Positions 36,863-60,100 of a stretch of DNA of 64,000 nt are shown here, piece after piece. The notes beneath the pieces were generated by a model. It was not told the origin of the DNA. It saw only the letters and a list, made by a program, of their open reading frames with translations, and made no database searches. Source of the DNA: Pavona decussata (lineage: Eukaryota). Positions within the stretch are counted from its first letter, which is position 1, and each line of letters starts with the position of its first letter. The translations under genes and the position numbers were made by a program. The stretch is taken from the NCBI GenBank assembly GCA_977016875.1, contig CDRNST010000080.1:2790001-2854000 (forward strand). Reading direction: 5' to 3'.

Positions 36863-39800
36863 GTAAGCTTATCAAATGCGTTTATAAAAGCTGTTTTAGG
36901 TCAAATACTTGTGCTCGTATTCTGCATTTTACACTGATTTTGAGGTGAATGCGTTTCAAAATGTCCCTTAGAACGTTACCAAGTGGGAGAGCTAATTGTG
37001 GGTTGTTGAATCTTCATTGTGGGTAACCCATGTCCTGGTAAGGCTGTAGTAAATGTCTGAAGGATAAAATTTTACAATAGACGTGGGCTTTAGTGATTGT
37101 TTGATGTGTTTTCAAGGATTCTTTTCTGATTTCCTTCACGCAAAACTTCCATAGTTTCCGGCGCCGGCCGAAACGTAAGCTTACAAGGTTTCATCTTTCA
37201 AAAGTTATCGAAACGCAAAACCTGCATCGGAAACCGGAATGTCTAATTGTGTCTTTCACAGAGTCATTTGTATTTTTTAGTTCTTCGCTACGTAGTTAGG
37301 ATGCCTAATGTTATTACATTCTAAGATCAAGAATGTGTTTATTTTTGCGCGATTCAATCAATGCAGATTGCGGAGGCGAAGGTCAATTTTTTGTATTGGT
37401 AATTGTGAATGATTGCTCGAGGTCGATTCATCATTCATCGCCGCAGCCGATTTATTATTATTTTTTTTTTGCCGCTTAGATAGTTTCTAGAGCGATGATA
37501 TTGGCCTATTTTGTTTCTTTAATTTTGCCATATTGGCTGCATTGTGCAAAGATAATTTTGCTATCTCATTTAGATGCTTCAAAGAAACGGTTGTTACTAG
37601 ATAACAATGGAAGTCATTCGCCGGGCTTAAAGGACGAAGGAATGTTTTGCAGGAAATCACTTTAGCTTAAAAAGTTTGTTGGCGGATGCCACAGAGATAT
37701 AAGCTCACGATTTTTTAAGTACATATGTCGTCTTTGCGGCTTTTGTATTGAGAAGGTAGTTTGCTTTGGCATCTAAAGGCGTAAAATACCACTTATTTTA
37801 GTATCACTCAATACTTGTTATTCACGTGCCAGGATTTCTGTTATCACTATTCTGCTGTGAAGGACGAATGGGGGTTTATATAATTCAGAATATTTCAGGA
37901 GTGCATGTGAATATCATATGTGCTCTTAAAATAGTTATATGCTCAATACAGGTATATACAGGTTTTGGTAGATGGGTAGAGACCTTTCTAATTTTCCGAG
38001 TTGCCATTTAATTTGTGAATTTTATTAATGCTTGATAAGGATAAACCTGAAAAAACGTTTTGATTATACAAGTGCATGCCAGTTTAAAGCAGTATGACTT
38101 CTGGTAACAATGGACGAGAATTCTTGCAATGTGATAGTCTAATTCCTCGGTCAAAAGGGTACATGTATGTACGTCAACTGATTCACGTAGTACATGTTTA
38201 TCACTGCATTTGGTGTGGATATAACAGCAGGTTGTTTGATCCCAAGACAGTTGACCTCTAAAATCTATGTTACATCAGTTTATCTATGTGTATGTATGGA
38301 TGTGATGGTACATTACATAAATTATGTGTCTTCTAGTATAATTTGGCCATTTTGGATCATTAGTACGAGAACAGAAAAGCAGCCTGGTATACAGATGAAG
38401 GACTTCAAATATAGGGCATATTGTGATAGTTCATTATCGGTACATCTTAAAACAATCTTGCTACTGGCAACCGACTGTTGTGGCTGGCAACTGCGTTGAA
38501 GATGATCAGCTACTGAGAGTGTGACAGCAATATTAATTAATGACAACAGTGCTGTTGGACTTTCTTTAGTTTATCCTAGGCTACTTTTTTTCTGGAAGAA
38601 AAAATTTTTTGTTGATCTTTCAAAACCTTTAATGATGGCTTAATCAGTTCCCAGAGCCTCTTTGCAAATGGTCTGCAACAGAAAGGACTGGAGGCTCTGG
38701 AAACACGACTTCCATGGACTTGTAATTTTCAAGTTGTACACGCATACAAACTCAATCTTTTACCTTGTAAATTAGATCCCGATCTAATGACAGCTCCCTG
38801 AATCAGTCAGGGCTTGGCATTGAAGTTAGAAGAAGCTGGCTTGTATAACATGATGTAATTTCACAGTGTGTTGGTCAGGAACTTACATGTATGAAATAAC
38901 AACTTAAAGGGCATTTTTTCGTCATTTTTAAACTTTGAATTTGCGACTTGTTGGTTACTTATTAAATATAGCAACCCTGCTTATTTCCACAGCTCATATA
39001 TTAAGAGCCAAGTGTTGGCCAAATTCACGAGGCCTATCAAACTAGTTTACCCAGGTTCACTATCTCCTTAATAAAAGTAATTTCCTTTCATTTTATTTAA
39101 TTTATAATATTAAAGGGATGATTTAACTACATTGCCAGTCTGCTCTTACAAAAGTTTATTAATAGCTTTAATTGAAAAAATCTTTTCATACATGTATTGG
39201 ACATTCTCATGTAGTGTCTATTGCACATAGTGTTTTTTCTTTCTTGAAAACTCTAACCTTGAGATCTGTACATCTTGGTTGTTTATTGGTATCAATTACA
39301 TTCTATCCTTGGCTGTAATAGTCCATAATTTGGCAGCAACAGTATACTCAATAAATAGAAGGAGGTTCTGTCAAGGCAGATATTGATCTTGTCAGTTGAC
39401 AATATTAGCATGGGAAACAAGTTGTTTTAAGGGGTTTTGACTTGTCAGTGTCCTTTTGCTCAAAGAGTGTTAACAAGAACCTGAATGTGATTTTCTTCCT
39501 GAAATTTGTGAAATTCTTTGGGAAATGTGAAGCGAAGGATGTCTCGTTACAGGTGTGTACAAAACTGGTTTCCTTGTAGCATGTATGCATAATCATGTAC
39601 ATATAGCATCTTGTTGGTGTACAAAAAAGAAAGTGGGAGACAATATAAAACTGGGGTGCCATATTTACATCATCTTGCTTTTGAAAGATAAATTTGGTGG
39701 TATCTTTGATCATCTCTCAGCAGTCAAACTCTATTGTGTGCTTGAATTGACAAAGTGCTTGTTACTACATCTATTTAAAAATTTGGTAACGAAATAACTT

Positions 39801-41000
39801 GCAAATCTCTCCAGATTTATGTTAAGAAAAAATGTATTGAGTGGTTTAAAATTGTTGCCTGATCAATACACTACATGTACATATAAAAATATTGATGAGT
39901 TCATTCATTTGAATTTACTTGCATCAAACTTTAGTGTGTGCTTGAATTGACAAAGTGCTTGCTACTACAGCCTGAACATCAATTTCATTTAATTAGGAAA
40001 TGGTGCAAATTTCACCAGATTTGTGTTTAGAAAAAATGTGTTGACTTCTTTAAAATTAATCTGTTGCCCTATTAAATCAGTGCACTGTATTAACACACTG
40101 TGAAAATATACATGTAGATGAGTTCATTCATCCAATTTTACGTTCATCAAACCTTGGTGTGATTTTGAATCAACAATGGTGCAAATTTTTTCAGATGTTA
40201 TTTTGTCAAGAAAAAATGTGCAGAATGGTTTAAAATTAATTTGTTGTCAGGTGATCAGTACACTGTATAAAAATATTGATGAGTTCATTCATTTGAATTT
40301 ACTTGCATCAAACGTTAATGTGTGCTTGAATTAACAAAGTTCTTCCGGTTGCAGTACTATACGGTCCGTGCACACTTCGGCCAATCTAATTTTTGATTTT
40401 TCCAACCAAAACGGAAAAAGAAAAAATTACTTATCCTTATCATATTTACATATCTTAAAGTACAGAATAACATAGAAAAAACAGAAAATGGTCAGGAAAA
40501 TCGATCATTTTTCTAATTTTGACGTTAAATTTAAAAATACAAAAAATACTGTTGACGGCTAAAAACTATTTTGCTACTATTTTATTTTCTTGTTTTTGTT
40601 GGAAAAGTGAGAAAAATAAAGTAATCTCCGAGTCCTAGATCATTTTTCTATTTTTTCGTTTTTTTCACAAAAAACAGAAAAATGAAAAAAGGGTATTTAT
40701 TCACATCATTTTTTCATTTTTTCTATTTTGTTTAAAAAATGAAAAAATAGAAAAATGGCATAGATATCGTCCAATTTTCCATTATTCTATTTCCACATGA
40801 AAAATAGAAAAATGCCACAAGGATTTTGACCGAATTTTTTTTTTTCATTTTAATCGATCGTAAGTTTGAAATTGAAATATGATGGATGTTACTAAAACCA
40901 GGAACGGGAGCCAGGAGCCGGGAACGGGGAACGGGGAACGGGAGTCTGAGAACGAGTGTTCAGCGGTAATCCCTTTAAGAATTCAAAATAGGCTATTTAA

Positions 41001-43054
41001 GGCAATTAAAGAGCGCCTTTAAGGTTTATGTTAGATTTTTTGGCAGATATTCAGGGTTAAGTTTCATAACAGGAATTAACAGTGATTGTCAGTAAAAATC
41101 AAAGAAATCGTGGCCAGGGTCAAGAATTTCGCTCATACTTTGTCAGTTTGAAGGTCTAGGTAAGTAACGGAAGGATATACAGTTAAGCCTGGTTTACACT
41201 AGCGATATAACGACATAACGACATAAGCAAAACGACACAAAAAAGGTCATTATGTCGTTATTTTTGTAGTGTGAACATGTAGACATAATGACATAATAGC
41301 AACATAATGACATGGACATAACCACATATGGAAAAAAAATGATCTTTTCCTTGCACGTTCCTTCTGTCGTTATGGCTATGTCGTTATGATGTTATATTTC
41401 GGCTGAAATAAGCGTGATAATCAGTGACATAACGACATAACAAAGAACCAATCAGAGCGCCACAAGATTTGTCGAACCCAGTTTGCATTAGCACAATTTT
41501 TAATATGGCGGCTACTGTGGAGTTGACAGACATGACGTAGAGAATTTATTGGCCTTGGTGCGGCTCGTGTAGATGAAGAAAAACTTGCTGAAGCGGTTCG
41601 AACTTATCCAATATTGTATGATTATGATAAAAGCATAAAGGAATTTAAAGACCAAACGAAAAAAGAAAACGCGTGGAAGAAGGTTGCAGTCCTGAAATAC
41701 TGGACGCACCCACTCTTTTCTTCTAGCAATTTTTTTCACTCGGCGTCGTCGAAGAAAAAGAAACAAATCATCGCAAAGAAAACAAGCATTTCTTTCGCCA
41801 TATTTAAAGTATTCTGTTCACCTAACCTTATGTCTTTATGTCAGTGTTCACATTACCGACCTAAGCGATTATGTTGTTTAATATGTCATTATGTTGCTAG
41901 TGTGAACCAGGCTTTAGTTTTGAAAATCTAAGATAATCCAAACCCAGCGAGGAAAAAAGCTGACCGGTAGTGGCTCAAATGCTCTGATATTAAAAAAAAA
42001 AAAAAAAGTTCACTCATTGATGTTTAGGTTTGCGGTTTTAAATCGTTAGGATCTAGCAGCACTTTTGCACGAACGTCTATCAAAGTTCAATAAGATTACA
42101 ATTCAGCGGCTTTGAAATCTACGACTTTCGCGTATAAGAGAACGATGCAATATTTGCATTTCGCAGGAACAGTTACTTCCGATTTGCTATCGAAGGCTGA
42201 TAAAGTTTCTCATCCTTAATAAAATTTTAAAAATTTAATTTTTCCAGGCTTTATTAACCGGGGAATCTGGCACATCGTTAAGTAAGATATTTTAGAATAT
42301 GACTTATTTTAAATCAACGGATGTAAATATCAGTTTGGAAGCCAAGTCGCTCGTCTGTGTCGTGTGTAGGCTCGATTTCAGCCGTCTGCCGGGTCCTGTC
42401 TTTAGATTTCAAAGTCGCGGAAAATAATTTTATTGAACTTTGATCGGCGTTCGCGCAAAAGAGCTGCTTGATCCTTAAGATTTAAAACCGCAAACCTGAA
42501 AGTCAATGACTGAAATGTTCTTTGTTAAAATAGCGGAACATTTGAGCCACTACCGGTCAGCTTTTTACCTCTCTGAGTTTGGGCTATTTAGACTTTTGCG
42601 TAATTGAGAAAAGTGTGTCTACTTAATCCGAGCTCAGTTCGCTCACAAACGAGCAAAGATGAAAGTAATTGCTATGTTTTGACAAACGAAGAATCAATGT
42701 ATTCATTTATACCTAGGAAAGATTCGCAGCTATGTAAACGTCTGTGTAGCGAGAAGCTGAAAAGTGAAAATCTCGAGTTCTCGCGAGGTAAAATCCGAGC
42801 TTCCGTAGGGTGACCGTTTTTCGTGGTTTTCTGCCGTTATATAGAATATTAAAAAAAAAAAAAAGTAACTGTATATCTTTCAGTTACTTACCTAGGCCTT
42901 CAAACTGACAAAGTATGAGCGAAATCGATTTTTGACCGTAGCCACGATTTCTTTGATTTTTACTGACAATCACTGTTAATTTCGTTATGAAACTTAACCC
43001 TGAATATCTGCCAAAAAATCTAACTTAAACCTTAAAGGCGCTATTTAAGTTGCA
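41001..43054. mobile_element. Nested long-TIR element flanked by TTAA (Kolobok/piggyBac-like target)
   Basis: 41001-41185 pairs with 42866-43054, and 41922-42125 pairs with 42405-42598. Confidence 0.7.
41186..41913. mobile_element. Internally deleted PIF/Harbinger transposon with a MADF-domain remnant and the transposase N-terminus
   Basis: TTA|AGCCTGGTTTACACTAGC ... GCTAGTGTGAACCAGGCT|TTA; plus strand DEEKLAEAVRTYPILYD..KEFKDQTKKENAWKKVA (MADF/Myb-SANT); minus strand RRRRVKKIARRKEWVRPVF. Confidence 0.85.
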
Positions 43055-45117
43055 TTAAAGAGCAAATTCTTATAGGGATTACCGCTGTACACTCGTTCCC
43101 GGACACCTGTTCCCCGTTCTCCGTTCCCGGTTCCTGGTTCCCCGTTCCCCGTTCCCGGTTCCCGGTTCCCGTTCCTGGTTTCCGTTCCTGGTTTAAGTAA
43201 TATCCACCATACTGTCGATCGATTAAAATGAAAAAAAAAAAAAAAAAAAAAGTTCTTGTGACATTTTCCTATTTTTCATGTGGAAATAGAATAGTGGAAA
43301 ATTAATTAGACGATATCTATGCCATTTTTCTATTTTTTCATTTTTTGAACAAAATGAAAAAAATGAAAAAATGGTGTGAATAAATATCGTTTTTTCATTT
43401 TTCTGTTTTTCTATTTTTGGGGGAAAAACGGAAAAAATAGAAAAATTATCTAGGACTCGGAGATTACTTTATTTTTCTCACTTTTCAACAATAACAAAAA
43501 AAATAATAAAGAAGCAAAATAGTTTTTAGCCGTTAACAGTATTTTTTGTATTTTTGAATTTAACGTCAAAATTAGAAAATGGAAAAATGATCGATTTTCC
43601 TGACCATTTTCTGTTTTTTCTATGTTATTCTGTACTTTAAAATATGTAAATATGATAAGGATAAGTAATTTTTTCTTTTTCCGTTTTGGTTGGAAAAATC
43701 AAAAATTAGATTGGCCGAAGTGTGCACGGACCCTATACAACTATTTAATTTAATCTGGAAATGGTGTCTCCAGATTTATGTTAAGAAAAAAAAATTGTTT
43801 CAAGAGTGGTTTAAAATTAATTTGTTGCCCTTATCAGTGCACTGTACAATGTATACACATTGTAAAAAAAAATTATAATTACATAGATGAGTTTGACTCA
43901 TCCAAGTTTAGTGGCATCAAACTTTAGTGTGTGCTTGATTTGACAAATTGCTTGCTACTACAGTGTAGATCAATTTAACCTAATAACTAAAAGGAAATGG
44001 TGGAAATTTCTTCAGATATTTTGTTAAGAAAAATGTACAGAATGGTTTAAAATTAATTTGTTATCAATGTGCTGTACAAATATAGCTGAGTTCATTCATC
44101 TAAATTTTCTCACGTGATGTACAGTGTATTGCCACATGTCACCTGCCTGTACAGTGTATTTACCGCAAAGATCTGTAGAAATCAAGCCTTTCAACTTTCC
44201 AAGTTTGAAGTTTTTCACTACTGGACTGCCTCATTACTTGAGGTGTAACTCGTGTTTTACCATTCGCTTACAAGGAGTTCTAAAATATTTTTATATTTGT
44301 TTTCTCCTTTTTTAATTTATCCCACTGTTTTACTAAATGTTTAAGGAATACATGTACTTGTAATCTTTGCCCTTATACATGTACCAGCCCTAATGTACAA
44401 AACACCTGGAGTGGCTGTGTGACCTATGTACAATAAAGTAGAGAATGTGTACTTTGAGTTTACACCAAAAGTTATGAATTCATGATATGCATCTCGGTGT
44501 ACAGTTTGTATATGAGATTCGTTCTTTTCTGTGTAAAATGATTCCATTATCAAAAGACAGATCATAACCACAACACATTTTCTGTAGAATTATTGTTTGC
44601 AAAATCTGCAGATTAGAAGTTTTCCAGTTACCCATCTGGCTATTAATTAAAATTAAAACAGCTCAACAAGAACCCTGGCCAATTCTTACTAATTTAAGTG
44701 AACAATTTCCTGATAGAATGATTACACTGTTGTTGGACCTGATAGGTGAATGCCAGATTAGTGTCACCCACGTGCCTGATACTATATGATCGATTTTTAT
44801 GATTTTCTAGACTGTTTATTATCAGGATACGATACTTACATGGTGCCCATTTATTAGTTACAGTTGTACATTATTCAATTGTACAGTTGATTAAGTGTAC
44901 ACAATTGATCCCCTTTAAAAAAGAAAAAAAAAAGAAAATTGCATGACTTGTACACAGCTGCATAATTGATTATTGTAAACTTGTTCATTTGCATATTATA
45001 ACCTTACATTTGTGATCATGGTGTTGTGTTTTTGTTCTCTACAGGCAAAATTTTCTTTACGACTTTGTGTCAAGCATGTTCATTTGTGATGGATAGTAAA
45101 CCAGCAATAATATCACA

Positions 45118-48100
45118 ATGAAGGACAATTTAAAGTTGGAATGTAATGGAGGTTCAGAAGAAGAACGAAGCAGTTTGGAAGTGTTGGTCTCTCTGCCAGA
45201 TAGAAAAGTCAATGTAAGAAAATCACTAACTCTATCTTGTGCATATATGATGTTTAAATATTGTGTAGATTGAAAACAGCTAACAGTAGAATCATGACAC
45301 ATGTGCTACAACTGAAACTTTGTTTAAACCTGAATTCTCACTAAACCAAGCAAAGAGTCACTAGTTCTTTCCTTACTAACTTCTTTGATTTGGTACAAAG
45401 AACTTTGAACAGTCCATTTTGGCATTCAGTCAATGTTGTCTTTTCCACCTCAAAAAGCACTTAAAATAAGTGAATGTTACATGTATACAATGTACCTAGG
45501 CCTCTGGGCAAGCCTGACAGTTTCTTCATAATTAACATCATAATGCTTTGGCAAAATAATGTTCTCGTGACAGAATGCAATATTTAAGTTGACACATCAT
45601 TTAATAATATTTAATTTCTTTTCGATGACTACATGTATTCATGAAGTGTTCAATTCGTTATTATTGTTTTTTTTTTTAAATTTTTGCAGTCGTTTTAGGT
45701 TATCATTGTACAACCTTTAATACTGCATCTACATTCTGCATGCTTGTTTTAAAATGAAAATTAAACTTGCAATGTTCTTGCAGCTGTTTCTTGTTTTGAT
45801 TTTCTGAAAATGGTAAAATTTGTAATTAAGCATTGGACCCCTGTTGTGTGATCTATAATTATTAACTTTTTTAGGCTACCATATTTGTTAAGTATCATTC
45901 TGTGACCATTCACACAAAGAGATCTGTGTGTATTATGTGAGAGAAGTAAATTATTATGGGAAATCTTTACATGTATTTTTGTTGATTTCATTTGAATTGC
46001 GCTAATTTGTAACTTTTGAATAGAGATCAATAATTGGATGATTTTGATTTTTGCTCTAGCTTTTCCTTACCCTGCGAGCAGAGGTAGCTTTTTCTTGCTT
46101 TCATTAAATTTTAATTATAATATTATACCAAGTTTACTTTTATTTTGTTTATGAGTTGCATAAAATTAAGCCCACTAAGTGCTACAGTGATTGTTTTGTC
46201 TCATTTCTTCTCATATTTAAATTCAAGACAGGAGGTGTTTAAATAATTATAATAAGCGGATTATAATATATTCAGTGAATTTTAGTAGGTTACATGCAAT
46301 GTACTTTATAAGTCTTTTGTCGTTTAACCCCAGTAAAATCATGCATTCATGTAGTTTGTTGCAGGGGCATGATCTGGGAAGAAGGGGTATCGGGAAGGGG
46401 GACACTGTCTTCCACACACATAAAAAAAAGGATGGACGTGAAAAAAAAAAAAATTAAAACTACATGTAACAAATTTATACAAAAACAACTTTATGCACCA
46501 ACACAAATTGCTGGTACATTAATTTGAAAAAAAAATTGGGACCTGCAGGTAGTTTTTGAGAGCTATTTAAATAGGCTAAAAGAAGATATGTGTACCAGAA
46601 TCTCATTATTTTGTTTGCGTGGTTCATAAATGTATTAATTTTTATCTCTGAGCGTTACCAAATGCATTTGATTTATAAGTAATTCTTGTCATTTTTTGCA
46701 AGTAATACCAAAGAAGATGTATGTGCGGCCATGACTCTAACGAAGGCCACTAGTCTAATTACATGTAGTTTTAGCGGATCCTATTTACATGTAAAGCAGC
46801 ACCAATCTGCACATTTACCCCCTGGAACCATAACAATCACACGCCCTTTTCTGTATGGGAATACCCCCTGCTCCCAAACATGTAAACCTACTCGTACTTG
46901 AAGTACACTGTATGTGTAGTTGTCATCATGTCGTCATCTTTCAGCAGTTGTTCATCAGTGTTGTATTGTGCCTGTTTTTTTATCTCTAAGGTTGCATTGT
47001 TAAGCCCTCTTTTACCCATTTCAACCATGCATGCATGCATGTACAATGTACAGTGTGCATGTACCTGTTAACCTAATGAAGGAACATCTATCACACGTGT
47101 ATGTGCATGTAACCCCTAATGAGTTTGCAGCCCATTGGGGGAGGGGCAGGATACTGTACTTACATGTACAGTATTTCTCTACAGCTGTAGTTGTTTTTGT
47201 CTACATGTAGGTAATAAACAACTTTGACTCAAATGCAACTTAACTTGCCATTTGTTAAAATTTCAGAAACTTTATCATTTTGATGTTCATGACAAGGTGT
47301 GGAATGCCAAACTTCAAGTGATTAATAATGAGTTGAACAAGGTGAGAATCTGCTGCTCAATACAATGTAGTTCACTTAAACGCACGCCTGTAGGTACAGT
47401 CAGTTGAGCTACTGTGTGCATGCAGATGTTTAACTGTTCAGATGCCAATCATTGATATTAATTTACAGGGACTGTCACTTTCTTTGGATACAACTCTAAT
47501 CTTGTCTTGAAAATTTTGTCTGACAACTGAGCCTATAAGCTACATTGTAGAAGTGTAAAATAATTGGTATTAAAAGAGATTCAAAAGCTGGCCCTAGTTG
47601 TTCAAAGAGCAGACATTTTATTTGTAAATCCAGAGGATGAGTCACTATCCACTAGATAAAATGTATTAATTGGAGTACCCTTGTANNNNNNNNNNNNNNN
47701 NNNNNNNNNNNNNNNNNNNNNNNNNNNNNNNNNNNNNNNNNNNNNNNNNNNNNNNNNNNNNNNNNNNNNNNNNNNNNNNNNNNNNNNNNNNNNNNNNNNN
47801 NNNNNNNNNNNNNNNNNNNNTGACTTTTAGATATTTTTATATATTTTATATTTTTAGACTGACTTTTATATATTTTTATATTTTTTATATTTTTTCTATA
47901 TGTATGTATATTTTATTGATTTATTCACGTGCTATTTTAAGTTTCGCTTGGCTCACAGGTTACGCTATGCGCCCTGTGGTGCTTCTTATACTGTGCATAC
48001 AGATAGTTTTACTGCGCATAATAATAATGATAATAATAATAATAATGATAATAATAATAATAATAATAATGATAAATAAATATATAAATAAAAAAGAATA

Positions 48101-51100
48101 ATTATAATAACAAAAATCATTATACACATACAGTGTACACACAGTAAGTTTTCATGTGTGGACCTAATACTTCAAGTATCTTTTAGTACATTGGTTAGTG
48201 TTTTTTTAGTTCAAACATGTCAATATGCTGCCTTAAATTATGAAAATTTTAAATCATTAATCTCTATTAAATAAAGGCCTGGTAAGTTATTGGGAATTTC
48301 AAGAATTACAGGCCTTAGGCCCTGCCGTTTCAAGCACTAGTTCTTTTGTCAGAGCATCTTCAGGAGTAAAGGCTAATAAATAAGAATGGAAAGCTTTCTT
48401 TAGCTTGTATGACAAGCTACATATAACTGTACTTTCCTGGTAGAGTCAGTTTTGAAAATTTTAATGGCAGCCCTGTTTACTGAAACCATGATTTTAATTG
48501 TCAGGGTGTTAAAGATGTCCTGAATTTTGGATTCTATGACCCACCCTGCAATGGGAAGTCGGGCAAGTTTCTTGAAGAAGAAAGGCCTTTCATTGATTAC
48601 CCTCTGAAGGGTACCCCTCCAGTTCTTGAGGTAGGTGGCAAATAGATTTTAGTGCATTTATATTGTTCCATTACAGTCATTATCTTACATGCAACATATG
48701 CACAATGGAGCTATAGTTGTATGTGGAGGCTGTACATGTACATGTATGTACATGTACGTATATGTAAGTAGTCTGCATACAGGTGCTGCGATTTTAAAAT
48801 TACAGCTGTATGACTTTGTTGAATTGGGTATCTTAGTTTGCTGTTGCATCTTTCTGTCATTTCAAAGCTTGTGTGTGCTTGTGTGTTGTTTGCACGTATT
48901 CATGGATGAAGGATTCAACTGTAATTTTCCATAATGTGAAAATTTCCATGTTACAGGATTTATAAATGTTGTTTTGTGTTTCTTTTTTCCCTTCAGTTCA
49001 AGGCTAAGGGAAGAGTGTACCGTTCCATGGTGTATGAACCAAAAGCTCTACAAAAAATGAATTCAAAGGTTAGAGACAAGCATGCAACAACAGTAATTTT
49101 TTTGCTATCATTTGAACTTATATTAGCTTTTTCTAGCCCTGTATTGTCATTCGTTCATTTTTATATATCTTATTGTAAATCAAACGTAATTCAGCCTGTG
49201 GCTGCAAGGTTTTTGATTAATAAACTATCTATCTATCTAGTAAAGTACATTGTGTAATCTCTTAATGCTTTTTCCAAACACAAGGTAAATCAGAGAAGGT
49301 TTCTGGAATTGGTCTCTTCAAATGCATTTGGTCAGGTTGCTAAGTTCACAGAAAAAGGAATGGATCCCAACTTCCAGGATGACAGAAGTGGAGGCAAGTT
49401 AAATTGTCACTGAGTGCTGTGAGGAACACTACTTGTACAACTGTATTATAATTATGTATTGCCTTCTGTTTTTGGTAGCTGTTACAAGTGTCCTCTTGCA
49501 TCTCCACATTTTTGCCTCTTTGCTCTCTCAGTTCATGCAACCATTGGCTAAAACATTCTGAATGTTTCAAAAATAGTCATAAGGAAAAACAACTGGAGAA
49601 ACATGCTAAATTTGAGTCAGGTTTTTCTACTGGAAATTGAATGGAAAAGGATAGAGCTTCCTTACCCTCTATAAATAAAGCCTCTACTTACTTACACTGT
49701 ACTTACTATCGTCCATATAAATGGCAGGTTCTTCTGAGTGTCAACTTTGAAAGAAATTGTGAAGTTTACAGATTTACCTAAAGAAAGTCTGATCAAATAT
49801 TCTTGAATTTTCAGAGTAAAACTTTATGGTAGACAATGCAGCCTTCCGTTGCTTTGTTTTCTTGGAATTGAAAGTAACTGGCAATCTGTTGTGAGAAAAG
49901 TTGCACTTGTAAACAAAACACTATGTATGTGTGGACATAGTAAAAGTGCCTTTGATACACATACAATGTACAAGTACATGTACATTAATAACAGAAATTA
50001 TTTCTGTTGAATTTTTAGAAACCCCCCTGTCCGTAGCTGTAACGAAAGAAAATGCCTGTGACATGATAATCATACTGGTGAATGGAGGAGCTCTCCTGGA
50101 CTATAGAACAAGGGACGGGCTGACACCTGTGCACAAAGCTGCTGCGTCTGGCCAGGCAGCCTCTGTTAAGGTATTACATGTAGCAGATACTGCTTGTCAT
50201 TTAGTGTATGATTGACATGAAATAAAATTAATGTGATGGTATACTTTTTTTAAGCCCGGTGAGTGAACGAGAATGATGTATTATTCAAAGTGACACAGGC
50301 CTGCATACTTGGAAAAAAGGAAATCCGAGTGCTCCTGTCAGGAGCCGAACCTAAGACCTTCCGATTATTAAAGCATTCGAACTAGTAATCGGAAGATCTT
50401 AGGTTCGACTCCTGATACACGTAGGACCACTCGGATTTCCTTCTTTTCCGAGTATGCCTGTGTCACTTTGAATATAAATACATGATTCATGATTGACATG
50501 TGACACAGGTTAACATGATCACTGTGATTGTTGTTATGTTCTCTCCAGACTCTGTTAGACTTTGGAGCCTCACCAAATTACAAAGATACCAAGGTGAGGA
50601 TAGTAGCTTTACGGGCTTTATGAATTGATTATGCAATGTACAGTACATGTAACTGAAAAGTGGAACATCCCCTTATGACCACTCTACATGTATTTATACC
50701 ACTGCTTCATGATAATGAGCTTCGTGCATTTGCCTTGACCAAAACCCTTTACATGATAAGTTTTGTTTCTTATCTGTAGTACACTGTTTCTGCCAAACCT
50801 TGCTAACCCCACCAATGTGTTATTACTATACATGTACGACCAAATTTTTTGGACAGCCAGTGATTGTCAGCTGGGTTTTACCATAAATCAGGGTGTTAGC
50901 TACAGGCTGTAGAAGGGAATCCAGCCATCCAGGGATGCCCTACTTTTCGACAAAAGTCACTAAAAGTCACCTTTTTAAAGACGTACATGTCCAAGATGCA
51001 TGTCTCTTGTGAAAGTAATGTGAAAGAATTAGGTGAATTTTCACTGACTTTTTTCGAAAAGTGGGTGTTCATACATGTAGGATGTCTGCCCACTGCAACC

Positions 51101-54100
51101 CTCTACACCTCGCCCCCCCCCCCCCCCCCCCTCCAAAAAAAAAAAATCATAAGGTAATCCTCTTTACTGGGTATAGTGTATGTTACCAGGGTTGAAGGAT
51201 TTGTACTTCCCTCGTTACTGATATTTATTATTGTTACACACACAATAAACCTTTCTCCCATGTCTCAAGAAAAAGATGTCTGGTCACCCTTCTGAGTATT
51301 ACTTGTACATAAAAGCCTTGGTGGTAATATTATTGGGAATCTTTTGGATTTTGCAAGACTGTGTACATGTAGCTCAGTACAGTGTAATTATCGATGAAGC
51401 TCGAGCAGCTGCCTTTAAGATAATGGCGAGCAGTTTTGGCAAAGTTCAATAGATACATGTACTTTGTAGAAGCAAATTAATGTTGTTAAACGTATCTGTT
51501 CTACCCTGCAGGGACTCACCCCACTTTTCTACACTGTACTTCATGGTGGAGATCCATACTGTTGTGAGATTCTTCTCAATGATCATTCTGAAATACACAT
51601 CTCTGATCATCAAGGAATGCAGGAAATACATTTGGTAATCACATGTCTCCAGACTTTCCTCTCCATTTACAAATGGCAACCTGTATGCTCCTAAGTTGAT
51701 GAGGTCCAATTTAACCCAAGTGTACATTTACATGTACAGTAGGCTAATCATTTCCAGCTGCTTTTGGGAGAAAACACCACATGAGAGTAGAGTAGCCTAA
51801 GGAGAAAATTAATGGTTCAGGTAGTCCAAGTATCATGTGTGGATGTAGTCAAAACAGTAATATGTGCTTATAAGTACATGTATAGTGACCAGAATCGAAT
51901 TTCTCCAGTGCAGGTAAAGAAAGCAAAATTATCACCTATACTGTAAAATAACTGTCTTGTCTTGATTTTTAAGCAAAGTCTCCCAACTGGAATACATGGA
52001 GAATGGTGAAGACTATTTATGTTGATGTTGGGGCATATATTGTGTAAAGGAATATTAAGCAAATTATAACCCACTGATTAATTTCGGTGTGGTACATAAT
52101 CGGACGGCAGTTATCAGGCGATAACAGTTGTCTGTTTTTCTTTTCTTTTTCTTTTTTTATTTTTTTTTTGAGAAGGTCGCAGTTTTAGGTCTTAGTTGTT
52201 GTAATCCAATCACAGTTTAATAAAATCAAGTAAGCTAGTTAGTTTGCATTTGTCTGGCTGCAATCATGCCGTGGCCATTACTTGTTGTTTTATCTTTTAT
52301 CCTTTGTATGGGAATTTAGTTTCCCCCAATTATTCTCCGGTCATGCGCTTTTTATATCTTTTGCAATTTCATTTTTGTTGTACATATACTAGCATGACAA
52401 AGCATTATTTAACTTAAACTAAAACTTAAACTTAAACTTTTCCACAGTGAAGCGCCAGTGTTTCAGAAATTAATTGGATGGCTATGAAATAAATAATCCC
52501 CTTTTCGGCTTGCTGGTATACCGGAGGATAATGCCCTCGGCTTAAAGATTGTCCTAAAAATTCACAGTTGCCCACAAAGCTTCGCTTCAACTGTTCATTT
52601 TTCAGACAATCTTCCAGCCTCTGGCATTATCCTCCGATAGATCAGCCGCCCAAAGGGGTTTATTTACTGATTGCAGTATTTTGGACCTGCAGTACATTTT
52701 TCATTTATTTTCTGTTAATTTTGTCTCCCTTCAGGCTTGTAAAAATGGGCTTGTTCAGCACTTGGAGCATCTGTTGTTTTATGGAGCGGCAATAGATGCG
52801 CGCACAGCCTCAGGAAACACAGCATTGCACGTGGCTGCTCTAAACAACCAGGTACTTTAGTGCAGCATAGAGATACTCACCTCTGAATTTACATGCACAT
52901 GTACAGTGGATTCCCCCGCCCCCCCCCCCCCCCCCCTCTCCGGGGCGGGAAATATGTTTAGAAATGCACCAAATAACGAAAATGATAAATTTGACGAAAT
53001 CTCGCCATCATTTTGGATAATAGTATAACTAAGGACACCTCGTTAGTACAGACAATTTTGTCGGTCCCGGCGTAAAGGCCAACAAATGAATGAATAATTT
53101 ATTAAAATGATAAAAGGTACAGTTGTGGTACTGTAGTATTTTGTTATGATCTCTTGATGAAAACAACCAGAGTATAACAGTTCAATTGAAAAAGAATAAA
53201 AACAAAAAGAAATGACACTATAAACCAGTGAAATAAATACATATGCAAACTGAAAATAACATTTGTTATAAATCCCAATTGGTGGAAGGCAAATAAGTTG
53301 GCTATTTACAAAGCCTGGCCTTGGAGCGGGGGCCTCCAGATTACGCGTCCGGCGCCCCTAACCACTAGGCCAGTTCTTTCTTGTGTTTGTTTTCATATTT
53401 TACCATTTTCAATACTGAAAAGTTTGTTTGACAAATATGACAGTATCTCCTGAAATAGTATCAGTTTTCCACGAAGCTACACACGTGAAACATCACGTGT
53501 TCAAACTCTCTTTACACTAAAAATGTGCGCGACGATTGTTTTTAAGCAGGATGTCTCATGAAACCTTAAGTTGTATTGTTATTAATTTTTCCATAACAAT
53601 GGCGGTCTTGCTGTTCACGGTCAATAGCTTTCATATTAATATTTTAGTAGTTTTACCACCCAGAAATTGATGTTTTTTCTCACAGCGCCATTCTAGTTTT
53701 CCATCTATAAATTGGCACTTCCGTTTACGTTTCCTACCACAGGAAAATTTGTTCTTCCAAGGAAATACTTTCGCTTTGGTATATTTAAATAACCTCTCCA
53801 TTGTCGGGCAAACACCAAAAATTGTGATTGCTTAAAGTGCTTTTAATAGTTAAATCACATGCTTATTATTAGAAGATCTGATAATTTTTCCCTTTTATGG
53901 GAAAATTAACCATTAACTTTTTATTTTTGACGTTGTTTAGACAGGATTTAGTAGAAGTTTGCTTACACTTTCGCGTGCAAACAAACAGCTGTCATACTCC
54001 ATTTGCAGACGATGTCTAATATTTAAATTAGAACCACGATATCCCTTACATCGAAAAGTCTATTTTGAAATTTGGTCCTACATGAGGAGCAGTTCAAGTT

Positions 54101-57100
54101 GTTACTGTAGTCTGTGAGGAGGAAATCAAACACGATTCCGTCTTGAAAGTTTGTGATCGAGACGCTTAAGAAAGCATTACTTTTAAAGTGGAAGGTATTG
54201 AGCCGCACTTTCCTGTAGCGGTGTTTATCGCGCTGTACAATGTTGTTCTCATGTTTAGCTTACGGAGTGTGACCATTCTTTTGAAAGCTGCGGCTGTTGC
54301 TATCTTTTAGCCTTGTTGATTGTGCTGTACAACTTGAAGCCCATAGATGTAATCCTGACGTACGATCATTTTGTGAAGGCCGTTAAGCAATATTCTGTAG
54401 TGCGCTATTTCGTTTTTCAGCTTTCATTTCTGCAAGGGCGATTTTGAATTTCTTTTGTTATATTTTGAGTGAATGTAATTATGCATGCGCAAAATATATG
54501 CAGTTCATACTGTTAGGAAATGCCTCGCTGATCACGTCATTGTAAAACTGACTGTGAAAAATATATTGTAAAGTTTGCACAGCGATCATATCACGCCACG
54601 TGCTTAATACCGGAGGAAAATAATTCGCAGTGTACCGACTGATAAAGGTAGTGGTGGTTTAAGCTCTGTAAGACGTATTAGCTGATGTACGAGCAATAGA
54701 CAACGAATGGGTGTTCAAGAGTTTTATTGAATAATCCAACGGAGCCTTCATTAATATAAATTAAGTATTGTCTAATGCTTTGCAGAAGTTGTGTATAAAC
54801 ACTGGAAAGTGGTGGTGTTTTGCCAATGTTCATTGGAAGTTTGTTTGCAATCGTTTTGCTGTACTTTATATCGCGTTTATATTCTTGATTTCTCTCGTAG
54901 GATGGATGCGCAAGAGTACTCCTGTTCAGAGGAGCGAAGAAAAATATTTTAAACTACGCTAACCAGTCTGCATACGAAGTAAGTACTTTGTTCGTAGTCG
55001 TTAATTTGTTACAGTTTTATACCAATGTTAATTTGAATTTGCACTTGTAGAGACCAATGTCTCAGGTCTAGTTTTTTTTAAATTGCAAGGAATTTACATC
55101 TCTTTGTATTTTGAACGATATACTGTTAATATATTAGATCGCCCTTTGAAATTTTACCATCGATGAGATTTGTGTACCTTTTCGAATTAGCCCCCCTAAA
55201 CTGGATCTTTGTTTGCCTTTTCCATGGAACGCAAGTTGTTACTCTTCATTTATTTATTTTTTCTTTTATTAGTGATTTGTGATACCGGATTAAAAATGGC
55301 TAACTAAGCTGTTCACTTTGCTTCGCGTGACATTAATATGGCGCTTTGCCACTGAATTTGTGCATATTTATTAGAATGAACCGGTTTCTATTTATGGCGA
55401 AGATATCGGTGTCGTATTATGGGCTTCTGGTGACGAATTATTTTGTCTCGACCTAAGAAACGTCTCATGACTCACCTGCTTTTTCTATGCAACGCATTGT
55501 TTTTACTATTTTATTTTCTTATTAGTCATTTGTAATACTGGTTTTAACACCGCTACTTGAGTTATTGGTTTTGGTTCGCGTGACGTAAATACAAGCTGTT
55601 GAATTTTTGCATAATTAGAATGAACCGTTACTCTTTTGGGAGTTATCATAGCTATTGGGGAACCTCTTCCTGTAAAACTTTTCTGGGCAAGGTATTTCTA
55701 TTTTCTGGTATTGTGGTGACGAATTTGCACTGACCGAGAAAAGTTTTCACAAAAGCAATTGTATCCGTAAACGCAATTGTATCCGCACTCAACCACAACA
55801 TGAAGCCATAGTTAGTAGACTAACTATGATGAGGCAAACGTGTTTCTCTATTTTCGCTTTAAACAAACAGCCTGGATCGCCAAATCAAAAGGCACTCGCA
55901 ATCTCACATAGGTGCTATTTTGCCACCAGCAATTTGTGCCTTATACCGGCTGTAGTACACTGCGTGTGAAAAATAAGGATGTGGAACTTTCTATTTGCTT
56001 AAGGGTGTTATTAATGAACCCTCGAGAAAGCCACAAGTTGAGATAATTGGCCGTCGGTCAAGGAAGCTTAATGCAGCGTAGGAATTGATTGTACCCTTGT
56101 TAAATACTGATCCCCCGACACGGAATGACCAACGGTTTTATCACTCACTTCCATTTTGGAAAAAAAGATTACGTCACGTGTTTGGTCACGGTAGAGGTGA
56201 CTTGCGTGACTTGCTCGAGTCTAAGATTTGGGGTAGGGAGCCAGAATGTGTAAAAATTAAGTGAAACTAGGGTTCGCGTAAAAATATACCTAACGGATTG
56301 TCGGCTTTTTGATTTTTTTTCCCACGCTGAAAGTCATTTGGTCGTGTGTAAAATTGTTTGATTCAACTAGCCCCCAGTCTTCTCTCTATTCTTAAGACGT
56401 CGTGCCGCTTGTGTAACGCGAGTCTCCTAACGAAAGAGGCAACAGTGTGTTATTAACAAACGAATTGGGAGCAACACTTTCAGCGTTTTGTTTTTTGTTT
56501 GCTGACGCACGTGGGAACTGAAATTCCATTTTCCTGTCAAAATATTGACATCAAGGAGCTAAGACAACTGTAACTGTGACATCTCTGAGTAACTCGCGCC
56601 CAAATTACGTTGAAAATCGTTTCACTTGTTTTTTTTTTTTGTTTTGTTTTGGTTAAACTTAGCTGGGAATGTTAGCAAGTAAGGTCCAGAAAAAATGCTG
56701 GCAATTTTTGTTGTCCAAACTTGTTCAAAACAAAAATTGGGAATAATTGTGTGATCTTATGCATATTCAAGAGCGAATTCTGCTACACCTTCAATATCAT
56801 TTGAAAGTCGTTTGTTCTTTCCCAACCGCTTATTTACCCTCATTACTTATTAATCGTTTATTTCTACTTTCTCGTTATTAGCTGTAATGCATTATTGATT
56901 GTTATAGGGGTATGGAACATGGTTTGGATGACATGAGTCGTGATATTTTAAGAAAAACGTGTTTGTTGTGTGTGATTGTAATTTCCTTCCTTTTTGCGCT
57001 TTTTCAGGTTGCGGCCGTTGGTGGCAATAAAGGTCTAGCTGAATTAATTAACAGTTTCACAGACAAGGATATAGGTACACAAAAAGCAATTTTCAAGTGT

Positions 57101-60100
57101 AATTGGCTTCCTTTCTTGATGCTGTTGGTTTTGTTAGCTTACACGATAAAAAATATTGTGACATTCTTTACCTTGTAATTACATTTACACGGCGCATTTT
57201 GACCGGCAATGTCAGGATAACCCTTTAGACTCGCTCAGCGATGTTCGTGTATTTCTGATTTTCACTGTTGACACAAGTATAACGCATTCCAAGCGTACAA
57301 ACGCTGAGTATTACCTAAGCGCGATCAGTCCTTGTTCGTGTACTTGCATTTCTAGGGATTTGTATGAACTCTTGTGCTTGCGTCGCAAGCGACGACGGCA
57401 ACGCCAACGAAAACGTCACTTAAATTATAACTTCATTTTATCTGTGCTACTTCGGGATTATTTCAACTTTTTCATCTTGTACAAAAATGACGAACTACCC
57501 AGGAACCAAATTGGTAGGAATGGTGTTCAGGTTAAGAAAGAGAATGAAAAGTTCATCGTCGTCTGCTCACGTTCTCCCCAAATCTTGAATTTGGTCATTT
57601 CACGTTGCTGTTTTTCCGAGGACGGCAAAGAAATATACCAAACTTTAAAGCGCACGTGGAGGGTGATTGAAAACGTCACTTGAAAATGTAACTTCATATT
57701 ATTTGTGCTACTTCGCGGTTATTTCAGCTCGTTCATCTTGTACAAAAATGACGAACTACCCAGAACCGAATTCGTAGGAATGGCGTTCAAGTGAAGAAAG
57801 AGAATGAAAAATTCATCGTCGTGTGCTCACGTTCTCCCCAAATCTTGAATTTGGTCATTTCACGTTGCTGTTTTGCCAAGGACGGCAAAGAAATATAACC
57901 AAACCGTGGCGGGTGATTGTTTTTCTCATTAAACCAAGAGAGGATGAATCTCTTAGGTTTAATCTCTTGATTAAACCTATTGTTTTATGATGTTCTCGTT
58001 ACCGTTGCCTTGGTAGCTGCTAAAGTTATTAGCGTCGAATGCTGAGAGGTGGTGTAAACAAAAGAGGGAGGTGTTAAGCATTGGTTGTTGAAAAAAGTTT
58101 TGGTCAAATAAAAGATATTTCTCTCTAAACTACATTTGAATGCCGCAGAGTGTGATTTCTAATGTTTTGCGCTGCGGGTTCACGGTCGGTGTTCTATTTG
58201 CTTGTACAGGTGAAGAGATGGTTCGAAAAAGTCGCATCGACAGCCCGCGGCGAAAATCGCATGTGTAGCCCACTCTTGCAAGCTAGCTAGCGGTTTTTGT
58301 TGGTGGGCTCGCGGGAAAGCCGGGCCAGAACGAGTGGCGAAGCCGCGGGGGAAATGGGGCGAGAGCAACAAGAAACCAACTCCGCACTTTGTTTCACGGA
58401 AATTTTAACTTGTTTTAGTTTCTCGCAATAACTTGTGCCATTTTCTTCGCTGTAGCGTCACCTGTTCTAGGATGGTTTTAATTTAACCCTGGCGACACGA
58501 CAATTTTTGAGAAAATCATCGCTTGTGCAGGGACAAATCGCTCGTGTGGCGTCGGCTTTAATTATTTCACATCAATCGCAAGCTTTCGGGAAGGTCCACT
58601 GTCCAATGAGAAGAGTAGCTTCCAGGAAACCAATCAAATTCACCCTTGGCCTCGAGTTGTTTCCTGGAAACTGTATTCGGATTGTGATTGGATAGTCATC
58701 TCCAGCACAAGAATATGCATGCACGCACGCTCAATTGATGACGCTTCGTGCTGTGATCGTGATAATCCCTCGAGAATCGTACACAATTTTTAAGTTTTCG
58801 TGTTTAATTTTTTTTTTTTCTGTCTTTAAATTGTAGTTAACACAGTTGTCAATTAATTTCTTTTCCAGTAAAACTCGCTGGCAAGCCAACTTACAGCACA
58901 CGTCGTCGGAAATCCGTTTCCAAACCGAAGGCTTCCTCGTTATTTCCTCGTACGTCATCGGAATCTCAGCTGTCAGTAAACAGCGACACGACACCACCGT
59001 CGCCTGTCTCTTCAACTCAAAGTATTCCTTCAATTACGGCCTCGGAAACAGCCTCAATCGATGAAACCAGTGCAACAATGAATGGTGAGCTCGAGACGTA
59101 TAAGTACCCGGGAAAAAAGATGAATAGAACTTTGTCCGTGAGCTCTACGGCTTCGGATTCTTCGAATTCTGAGGAATCCGACTCGGGTGATCTCAGTTCA
59201 CCGAGGGAGGAGACACGGAATAATCGAACATGGCGACAGTTCTCGGTCCCAGATATGACGGAGAAGGCCGTTGTTCCGCCGGTGAAAGCGGTTTCTGGAG
59301 CGGCGACAATTCGTAAACGGCTCTATGCAAGTGTGCCCGGGAAACGTTTTGTGGCCATCAAGGATTATCGGCCTTTTATGGCCGGAGAGTTGGCGCTTGA
59401 GAAAGGAGATGAAGTGGAAGGTAATGTTGCGTTACTTATTTTTTTTCTACGGATTGAATTTCAAAGATAAAGTGTTGTACCTGGTACGATTCATGCATGC
59501 AGAGACTCGTTTGTTTGTTGAAATTAGCGGGTATGAAATCAGGACTTGTTTTGAATTTCTCGACTGGTAGCGATAGAGACTCAGATAAACACCTGGAATA
59601 GGCCGAGTGTAGTATGTTCCTGTGGAGAAATGTCATATTTAATTTTCTTTTGTGACATCTTTAGAAGTTGTCATATATAAATTGTTCAAAGACCAGACGA
59701 AACTTGATCTGTATCAAAACAAAGATGATGACTTCAGGTGATAATTGTTCTCAGTTGCAGATAATTTCACGCACTTAGTTGTTTGTATGTACAACAGATG
59801 ATACTTCGCCGATTTTCAGGAGAAATGCTGATAAATATACAAAAACCGAACCATCGTTTCATCAGTTAGCAGTTAAATGGAATTGTAAACCGACGACTTA
59901 GCGCTGAGACGAGACTTTCTGTAAACTTTACAATGTAAATAAAATGTCACTGGCAAACAGATATTGCATGGAGTTATATCGCCAATCCGATTATTTGAAG
60001 CTTCGTTTTATCTCTCTCCGTTCCTGTGGGGTGTTATGTCTTGCAGTGTTGTACGTCGGCGAGAAAGGTTATTGGGAAGGTCGAGTGGGGAATTCAACTG

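Follow-up and report, generated by a model that had tools for sequence, protein, structure and literature searches.

Probable excision scars of TA-targeting Tc1/IS630 transposons in a CpG-depleted domain of the SHANK gene of the coral Pavona decussata

Known transposon footprints and the coral octamer

Tc1/mariner elements insert only at TA dinucleotides, which they duplicate, and the non-transferred strand is cut 2–4 bases inside the element. The footprints consist of the first or last 2–4 transposon bases between two TAs, such as the TACAGTA and TACTGTA products of Sleeping Beauty (PMC6943129, PMC7827188); ISY100 has a 2-base 5' stagger (PMC2170065), and Tc1 of C. elegans leaves a +4 scar (PMC13148408). 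Here we describe a dense field of the palindromic octamer TACATGTA in the SHANK gene of the coral Pavona decussata. The gene lies in a stretch of 64 kb (GCA_977016875.1, contig CDRNST010000080.1, positions 2,790,001 to 2,854,000), hereafter the window. Together with TACA-N-TGTA, TACAGCTGTA and TACWGTA, this octamer probably records the excision of Tc1/IS630-type cut-and-paste transposons that target TA. The scars are fixed at ~5% of the TA sites of a CpG-depleted, single-copy domain of 10.5 kb around the 5' end of the gene.

The coral scars are like Tc1/mariner footprints in that the TA is duplicated and terminal CA../..TG bases are found between the TAs after end-joining. They differ from the products described in Tc1/mariner assays in two respects. 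The coral mostly keeps both 2-base ends (+6) rather than generating +4 or +5 products, presumably because of the local end-joining machinery, and tens of thousands of fixed scars can be read from its genome. Excision scars, including those of TA-target Mariner elements, were already recognized as a genome-scale source of small indels in a rice census (Roffler and Wicker 2015, PMC4423477). The rice scars were collected by alignment of two species and are heterogeneous, whereas those of the coral are dominated by one octamer, were detected as a k-mer excess and are found in CpG-depleted domains.

CpG methylation raises the excision of Sleeping Beauty, Frog Prince and Minos, >20-fold, while Tc1, Himar1 and Hsmar1 are unresponsive (Jursch et al. 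2013, PMC3680223). This link of donor methylation or compact chromatin with excision would predict more scars in methylated DNA. Nevertheless, the effect was obtained with plasmids in human cells, with no natural scar landscape, and for elements of the inverted repeat/direct repeat (IR/DR) type, to which those of the coral may or may not belong. In cnidarians, CpG-poor stretches inside genes are an accepted trace of germline methylation (PMC8857917 and works cited there). Compared with the mosaic gene-body methylation of these animals, the coral SHANK gene is divided into 5' DNA that is CpG-poor and 3' DNA of normal CpG content. The searchable literature contains no report that connects transposon scars with methylated domains, and a literature search for TACATGTA yielded an oomycete promoter motif and primers but nothing else. 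The scars themselves are of a known kind, but as far as could be searched, it has not been described that they are so abundant, that one octamer dominates among them or that they are tightly linked with CpG-depleted domains.

Insertion of constant bases at TA sites

The window contains 30 copies of TACATGTA, 28 of them within 38160–51882 and two (2395 and 6968) in the remaining 53 kb. The 28 positions listed by eye in the first-pass annotation of this stretch, which had proposed mass excision of Tc1/mariner elements from SHANK introns, are all exact, and there are no others than these two. The octamer is the most over-represented 8-mer of the SHANK gene region, with a mean interval of ~380 bases over the first 14 kb of the gene. 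Dinucleotide-preserving shuffles of the window (n=100) yielded 1.19 copies on average and 4 at most. For the domain proper (10,506 read bases, 38001–40340 plus 43700–52000), Markov models of orders 0, 1, 2 and 3 trained on the domain itself predict 0.38, 0.45, 1.2 and 3.0 copies. The local dinucleotide model, designated beforehand as a possible refutation, is itself refuted by the ~60-fold excess of the 28 observed copies over the 0.45 expected.

The variants said to accompany the octamer were also found, with 15 TACA-N-TGTA and 4 TACA-NN-TGTA in the domain versus 3 and 1 elsewhere in the window. The distance between TACA and TGTA peaks only at 0 (28 copies) and 1 (15 copies), beyond which it falls to background. 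CATGTA/TACATG forms the enriched core (72 copies, where the rest of the window predicts 3.8), and the octamer is a discrete unit, as T..A surrounds ACATGT in 28 of its 36 domain copies. All 24 kinds of one-mismatch neighbours together total 23 copies, fewer than the exact ones.

The flanks of the 28 sites are mutually unrelated, and apart from their last 100 bases, positions 44100–47685 are unique in the 602-Mb assembly, in which the locus has no haplotig. The motif is thus not repeat-borne, and an interspersed repeat or satellite was rejected as its carrier. Both strands are equally represented in the domain (CATGTA 36, TACATG 36; ATGTAC 24, GTACAT 22), which argues against an RNA-level signal; Rbfox, PUF and branch-point motifs were rejected on this basis. 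The distances between TACATGTA sites revealed no periodic or nucleosome-type spacing.

Every motif site was compared by BLAST with 264 kb of coral DNA, including 20 independent loci (L001–L020, 200 kb), and four paralogue sets were found. In a seven-copy family of L009–L019, three copies (L009:6700, L015:2766 and L017:2640) read gaatttacTACATGTAgctg and the other four, including the most diverged, read gaatttacTAgctg. As the most diverged copy has no additional 6 bases, the polarity is that of an insertion. The repeat at L009:6700 is CpG-normal, and the scar therefore also arises in such DNA. A recent segmental duplication, L008–L010 and L016–L017 (C1:678–690 kb and 754–766 kb), ~76 kb apart and 99.7% identical in the piece compared, has the scar common to L009:6700 and L017:2640. 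The octamer at L007:998 represents +6 bases relative to two paralogues. Lastly, hand realignment of the CpG-poor pair L006:9773 and L013:2179 gave the common frame CAAyyTT-TA-CTTCC-TA-yTTGCTCA, in which the first TA is replaced by TACATGTACAGCTGTA in one copy and the second by TACATGTA in the other.

Two units of a ~200-bp tandem repeat in the window (39700–40340, with no other copy in the genome) had been put forward as evidence for insertion. One of them stands, as the other units read ATA-TA-GATGAG and unit B (40109) hence corresponds exactly to TA -> TACATGTA; the other (39872) is ambiguous in its alignment. In an unbiased census of 3–14-base indels between paralogues, 4 of the 42 six-base placements, from two independent events, are TA -> TACATGTA, against 1 in 4,096 by chance. 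The unscarred paralogue does not always have TA; it reads CA/GA in one case and TG in another.

The hairpin miniature inverted-repeat transposable element (MITE) of the right part of the domain made it possible to follow a single site genome-wide. This copy carries TACACGTA where that of L001 has TA. Genome-wide, there are 2,456 occurrences of the 20-base word that surrounds the empty site, and TA is present in 99 of the 100 copies listed. TA-NNNN-TA is found at this site in only two places in 602 Mb, with inner CATG (C60:2631729) and inner CACG (the window copy). Variants of any length amount to 24 places, including TACAGCTGTA, TACAGTGCA and TACAGTGTTAA, and the rest include trivial 1–3-base changes and tandem duplications. 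TACAGTG... remnants occur as well, and some variants retain CAGTG or CAGTGC, five or six bases with which Tc1-type inverted repeats typically begin. Constant bases have been added at one TA in independent copies of this element. The +6 differences at TA in the seven-copy family, the MITE and the L006/L013 pair bear out the earlier suggestion of insertion rather than point mutation.

The genome also harbours candidate sources of these bases. Searches with PF13358 (DDE_3, the Tc1/IS630 catalytic domain) gave at least 150 matches over the Pfam cut-off among 447 candidates. About 25 of them share the same intact 357-residue frame, and many intact frames of 357–384 residues are present. The word TACAGTGRRACCYC has 930+928 genome copies, compared with 7+8 for its reversed control, and many copies form plus/minus pairs 165–190, 490–565 or ~1,800 bp apart (range 165–1,865). 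We read these pairs as TA-flanked elements starting TA|CAGTGGAACC..., from MITE to full Tc1 size, with a total of ~1,860 such ends. Together with the +6 insertions at TA and the transposon-end bases (CA..TG, CAG..CTG and CAGTG), the resident transposases support the excision-scar interpretation. Intact DDE_3 frames of 315–384 residues were also found at fixed 2.4–3.7 kb spacing in tandem arrays of 6 to 13 units (Table 1). Another recurring word, TACAGTGATCTAGATTTCC..., was considered as an element end and rejected, as it belongs to a 16-copy local family in one orientation. A scan of the 264 kb for TA-flanked inverted repeats with CA..TG ends mostly returned TACA/TGTA words within larger palindromes.

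In the mechanism known for this family and proposed here, an element would insert at TA and duplicate it, and the transposase would later cut a few bases inside each 5' end, leaving flanks with TA plus terminal CA(G)/(C)TG. Sealing of the break by end-joining would produce TA-CA|TG-TA, with a net gain of 6 bases. Retention of both 2-base ends would give TA-CA-TG-TA, and that of both 3-base ends TA-CAG-CTG-TA. Each scar would generate new TA sites, whose re-use would build chains resembling (ACATGT)n micro-repeats. Such re-use would explain the chains at L004:8104–8154 (TA-CAGTG-TA-CAGCTG-TA ... TA-CAGCTG-TA-CAACTG-TA-TA-CACTG-TA), 47161–47209 and 48733–48756, and it is probably also behind the 182 genome copies of a 16-mer hexamer run, GTACATGTACATGTAC. 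In the same locus, at L004:8790–8865, a small local repeat contains three copies of TACATATGTA (TA-CA-TA-TG-TA), which may combine two +4 scars.

Scar density, CpG depletion and competing explanations

The motif field coincides with a domain whose CpG observed/expected ratio (o/e) is 0.31, versus 0.89–1.3 outside, which substantiates its earlier description as CpG-poor. In 2-kb bins, CpG o/e is 0.19–0.36 in the domain and ~1 elsewhere in the window, with abrupt boundaries at about 38.0 and 52.0 kb (500-bp resolution). TpG+CpA o/e reaches 1.36 in the domain, versus 1.08 next door where CpG o/e is 1.04. We infer from this composition that the 38–52 kb region has probably undergone long-term germline methylation. 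The nested insertion that splits the domain had been reported to be devoid of the motif, and it indeed contains none.

TACATGTA occurs 62,960 times genome-wide (1.05 per 10 kb), about threefold over a composition estimate of ~20,000, and its reversed control 23,613 times. The corresponding numbers for TACAGCTGTA are 2,928 and 484; over the first 1.4 Mb of contig C1 it occurs just three times, always in CpG-poor scar clusters. These genome-wide figures are pattern counts; for the relation with CpG depletion, which the first-pass annotation had proposed to map, the independent sample was the 200 kb of L001–L020. Scar density follows CpG depletion in this sample, with 11.7 scars per 10 kb at CpG o/e <0.4, 3.9 at 0.4–0.6, 2.0 at 0.6–0.8 and 0.8 at >0.8 (binomial p = 2e-12). 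In the window, 47 of the 891 TA sites of the domain are scarred, against 0 of 270 in the adjacent CpG-normal SHANK DNA (53400–57000). The latter segment is single-copy (14 candidates, all scored), its TA density is similar, and ~9.5 exact motifs would be expected in it at the density of the domain.

After background subtraction, ~18 one-mismatch copies for 28 exact ones correspond to a mean scar age of ~0.08 substitutions per site. With 47 of 891 TA sites scarred, the TA-to-scar rate of this domain would roughly amount to one-quarter of its substitution rate per base. By a similarly rough calculation, only ~0.01 insertion-excision cycles per genome per generation would be needed, which active Tc1 elements can supply.

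Several processes might confine the scars to such domains. The elements might prefer to insert into methylated or transcribed chromatin. Alternatively, excision might be more frequent from methylated donors, so that copies would become scars there and persist elsewhere; this would explain a domain nearly free of resident elements in surroundings full of them. Local hopping might also leave trails on one haplotype. We tentatively put forward, as a possibility to be taken seriously, that long-methylated chromatin is a preferred landing or launching ground of Tc1-type transposons, which would make TA -> TACATGTA a domain-specific germline mutation process.

It appears unlikely to us that the scars are real footprints confined by time only, with old unique DNA gathering both CpG loss and scars next to young flanks and no preference for any chromatin. 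Consistent with this possibility, the flanks at 25–38 kb and 52–64 kb and the motif-free L019 have thousands of repeat candidates at 76–95% identity, versus 204 for the domain piece, and cnidarian transposons of young age remain rich in CpG despite being methylated (PMC8857917). However, the segment 53400–57000 is single-copy with conserved SHANK exons, and thus old, and it has a CpG o/e of 1.06 and no scar. The restriction is therefore not merely that of old unique DNA versus young repeats. Furthermore, the scars (~0.08) are about as young as the flanking repeats, which should carry about one-third of the steady-state density but carry none.

A number of observations weigh against excision scarring or against its link with methylation. 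In this one assembly, the empty, occupied and scarred states were never all observed at one site, and the resident elements are known from end words and transposase frames; in the inverted-repeat scan, only L005:3750–4125 was plausible as a MITE. TACATA/TATGTA, the +4 scar that Tc1 typically leaves in C. elegans, shows an enrichment of only ~2.3-fold. After masking of all TACA(N0-2)TGTA in 38001–52000, TGTACA remains ~5-fold in excess (17 versus 3.5) with heterogeneous flanks; this residue might plausibly come from junctions of adjacent or half-deleted scars (..TG-TA-CA..). The bases flanking the scars, with C at +1 in 34%, are unlike the AT-rich flanks preferred by Sleeping Beauty. No canonical scar was found at a second TA of the same MITE, and scarring must thus be strongly site-dependent. 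As to CpG depletion, it is only a proxy for methylation, most of the sampled CpG-normal DNA consists of repeats at 76–95% identity, which partly confounds age, and the proven single-copy control is limited to 3.6 kb.

There is very little room for the idea that TACATGTA is a selected palindromic DNA-binding site kept within gene bodies or in regulatory introns. Palindromes of the ACATGT type are preferred by Iroquois-class homeodomains, and the motif is palindromic, strand-symmetric, poor in one-mismatch neighbours and found at high density near the 5' end of a developmental gene. Nevertheless, +6 insertions of this octamer occur in scattered MITE and repeat copies, the TACAGCTGTA and CAGTG remnants that go with it could not be bound by one factor, and its density tracks CpG o/e at unrelated loci. 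Equally improbable is a transposon-free insertion at TA, by (ACATGT)n slippage or by repair that forms fold-back palindromes. The octamer is a perfect palindrome, a short repeat is present at 48731–48766, and the copies of GTACATGTACATGTAC could be taken as products of slippage. However, the six hexamer phases are unequal (TACATGTA 28, ATGTACAT 5), so that slippage is not the source, and most sites are solitary in unique sequence. Fold-back repair would copy the local flank and not CATG every time, and the other palindromes AACATGTT, CACATGTG and GACATGTC occur only 0–1 times.

Weakest of all, to the point of being negligible, is an origin in CpG decay of TACGCGTA, TACACGTA or TACGTGTA ancestors or in the base composition of methylated domains: the field does coincide with CpG-poor DNA in which TpG/CpA are 1.36-fold over-represented, and one domain copy reads TACACGTA, but composition models of orders 0–3 yield only 0.4–3 copies, the sibling products are not enriched (TATGCATA 1, TATGTGTA/TACACATA 5, versus 28), the precursor TACGCGTA is absent from 253 kb of CpG-normal DNA and from all 264 kb examined, paralogues differ in length (+6) and not by substitution, and the motif arises in CpG-normal repeats too (L009:6700). 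CpG decay is excluded for the bulk of the sites, and composition, a selected motif and slippage are likewise rejected for them.

Excision scars are usually seen singly in assays, whereas here they occupy ~5% of TA sites. If long-methylated chromatin is indeed a preferred landing or launching ground, the process would rewrite the introns of methylated genes and seed (ACATGT)n micro-repeats, and a k-mer signature would reveal past methylation and transposon activity directly from genome sequence. Should the link with CpG depletion be causal, the scars would provide a natural read-out of where cut-and-paste elements land or leave in an animal with mosaic methylation. Gene-body methylation would then also have a mutational cost or side effect not described in the searchable literature, and TACA(N0-2)TGTA per TA could serve as a marker to date and map past Tc1 activity in corals. 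Motif searches call for caution, as intron-enriched palindromic 'binding sites' may be scars.

Organization of the SHANK locus

The coordinates of the scars and of the other features of the locus are collected in Table 1. The identification of the gene as SHANK in the first-pass annotation was corroborated by matches of two exons to SHANK3, and further SHANK-like exons are present near 54.9 and 57.03 kb. The scars had been described as all intronic. None of the recognized exons contains an exact TACATGTA, but seven sites (38160–44376) precede the first recognized coding exon (45112), and the intronic location is thus not fully established for all sites. The TACACTGTA found in a coding exon is probably a chance match and not a scar.

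Table 1. Scars, domains, exons and transposon-related features (window positions unless a contig is named)
Feature	Position	Strand	Remark
CpG-depleted scar-rich domain, left part, upstream of SHANK exon 1	38001..40340		CpG o/e 0.07-0.6 per 500 bp
Nested terminal inverted repeat (TIR) transposon insertion splitting the domain	40341..43699		CpG o/e 1.32, no scars, 3.4 kb
CpG-depleted scar-rich domain, right part, SHANK exons 1-8 and introns	43700..52000		CpG o/e 0.05-0.68
Control, adjacent single-copy SHANK intron and exon DNA	53400..57000		CpG o/e 1.06, 270 TA sites, no scar
Single TACATGTA scars	38160..38167; 38884..38891; 39189..39196; 44349..44356; 44376..44383		Exact match
TACATGTA in tandem-repeat unit A, followed by CATA	39872..39879		+8 versus unit C, alignment ambiguous
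TACATGTA in tandem-repeat unit B	40109..40116		TA in other units
Double scar, TACATGTA then immediately TACAATGTA	45478..45494
Single TACATGTA scars	45630..45637; 45968..45975; 46461..46468; 46760..46767; 46786..46793		Exact match
Triple scar in 49 bp, TACATGTA, TACAGCTGTA (47180), TACATGTA (47202)	47161..47209
Scar pile-up TA-CATG-TA-CATG-TA-TG-TA-CATG-TA	48733..48756		Short repeat reported by Tandem Repeats Finder
TACAATGTA, then TACATGTA at 49975	49962..49982
TACATGTA scar 5 bases into intron	50175..50182		Exon end 50170
Hairpin MITE copy with derived TA -> TACACGTA (+6) at 50414-50421	50250..50490
Single TACATGTA scars	50644..50651; 50685..50692; 50829..50836; 51072..51079		Exact match
TACATGTA, then TACAGTGTA at 51378	51364..51386
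Single TACATGTA scars	51454..51461; 51729..51736; 51875..51882		Exact match
TACACTGTA variants	40259..40267; 46904..46912; 49693..49701
TACAATGTA variants	43845..43853; 47042..47050; 47361..47369
TACAGTGTA variants	43959..43967; 48129..48137; two in 44120..44158 (44120, 44150)
TACAGTTGTA variant	44859..44868
TACATTGTA variant	47541..47549
TACAGCTGTA, both 3-base ends retained	48801..48810
TACAACTGTA variant	49436..49445
TACACTGTA within coding exon (..YTVL..)	51530..51538	+	Excluded from scar list
Putative SHANK exon 1	45112..45210	+	Open frame with ATG; own reading, not search-confirmed
Putative SHANK exon 2	47270..47344	+	25 residues; no structure-database match alone
SHANK exon (SHANK3 residues 47-80)	48505..48630	+	Sequence match
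SHANK exon (SHANK3 residues 216-255)	51512..51634	+	Sequence match
Assembly gap (N)	47686..47820		Length only estimated
MITE-like elements	50250-50490; 53214-53372; 57388-57937; 60874-61020; 61427-61658; 63180-63449
Transposase arrays	C114:2216986-2261607; C347:105863-131602; C511:1721-27696; C294:1288159-1300645; C82:1935887-1949202

The SHANK gene is split in composition. Its first ~8 coding exons are in CpG-poor DNA (o/e 0.31) and the later ones in DNA with an o/e of ~1.1, and the switch takes place within ~1 kb at 52000. The gap in the assembly is CpG-poor and scarred on both sides, and no count depends on it. To its left is a ~100-bp dispersed repeat (47580–47680), and to its right an AT-rich simple sequence with a 93-bp (ATA)n run (47821–48110), which likely caused the assembly break. 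In our own reading of the sequence, the gene appears collinear across the gap, from putative exon 2 to the exon at 48505–48630.

A CTATAC direct repeat apparently borders the nested insertion, whose ends read GGTCCGTGCACAC...; the insertion is not of the TA-duplicating type. In an internal repeat array at 14–25 kb, one copy shows CA -> CACGTACA (+6) at 15593–15606, where five others have CA. This palindrome-rich insertion, at 15599, falls outside the grammar of the TA scars. Indels of 4–6 bases with GTAC or ACGT (17782, 16582 and L009:3328) were considered and rejected, as they are deletions in individual copies or of ambiguous polarity. The SHANK introns also harbour short, high-copy MITE-like elements of 150–550 bp, which have 80–95% identity and hundreds to thousands of copies.

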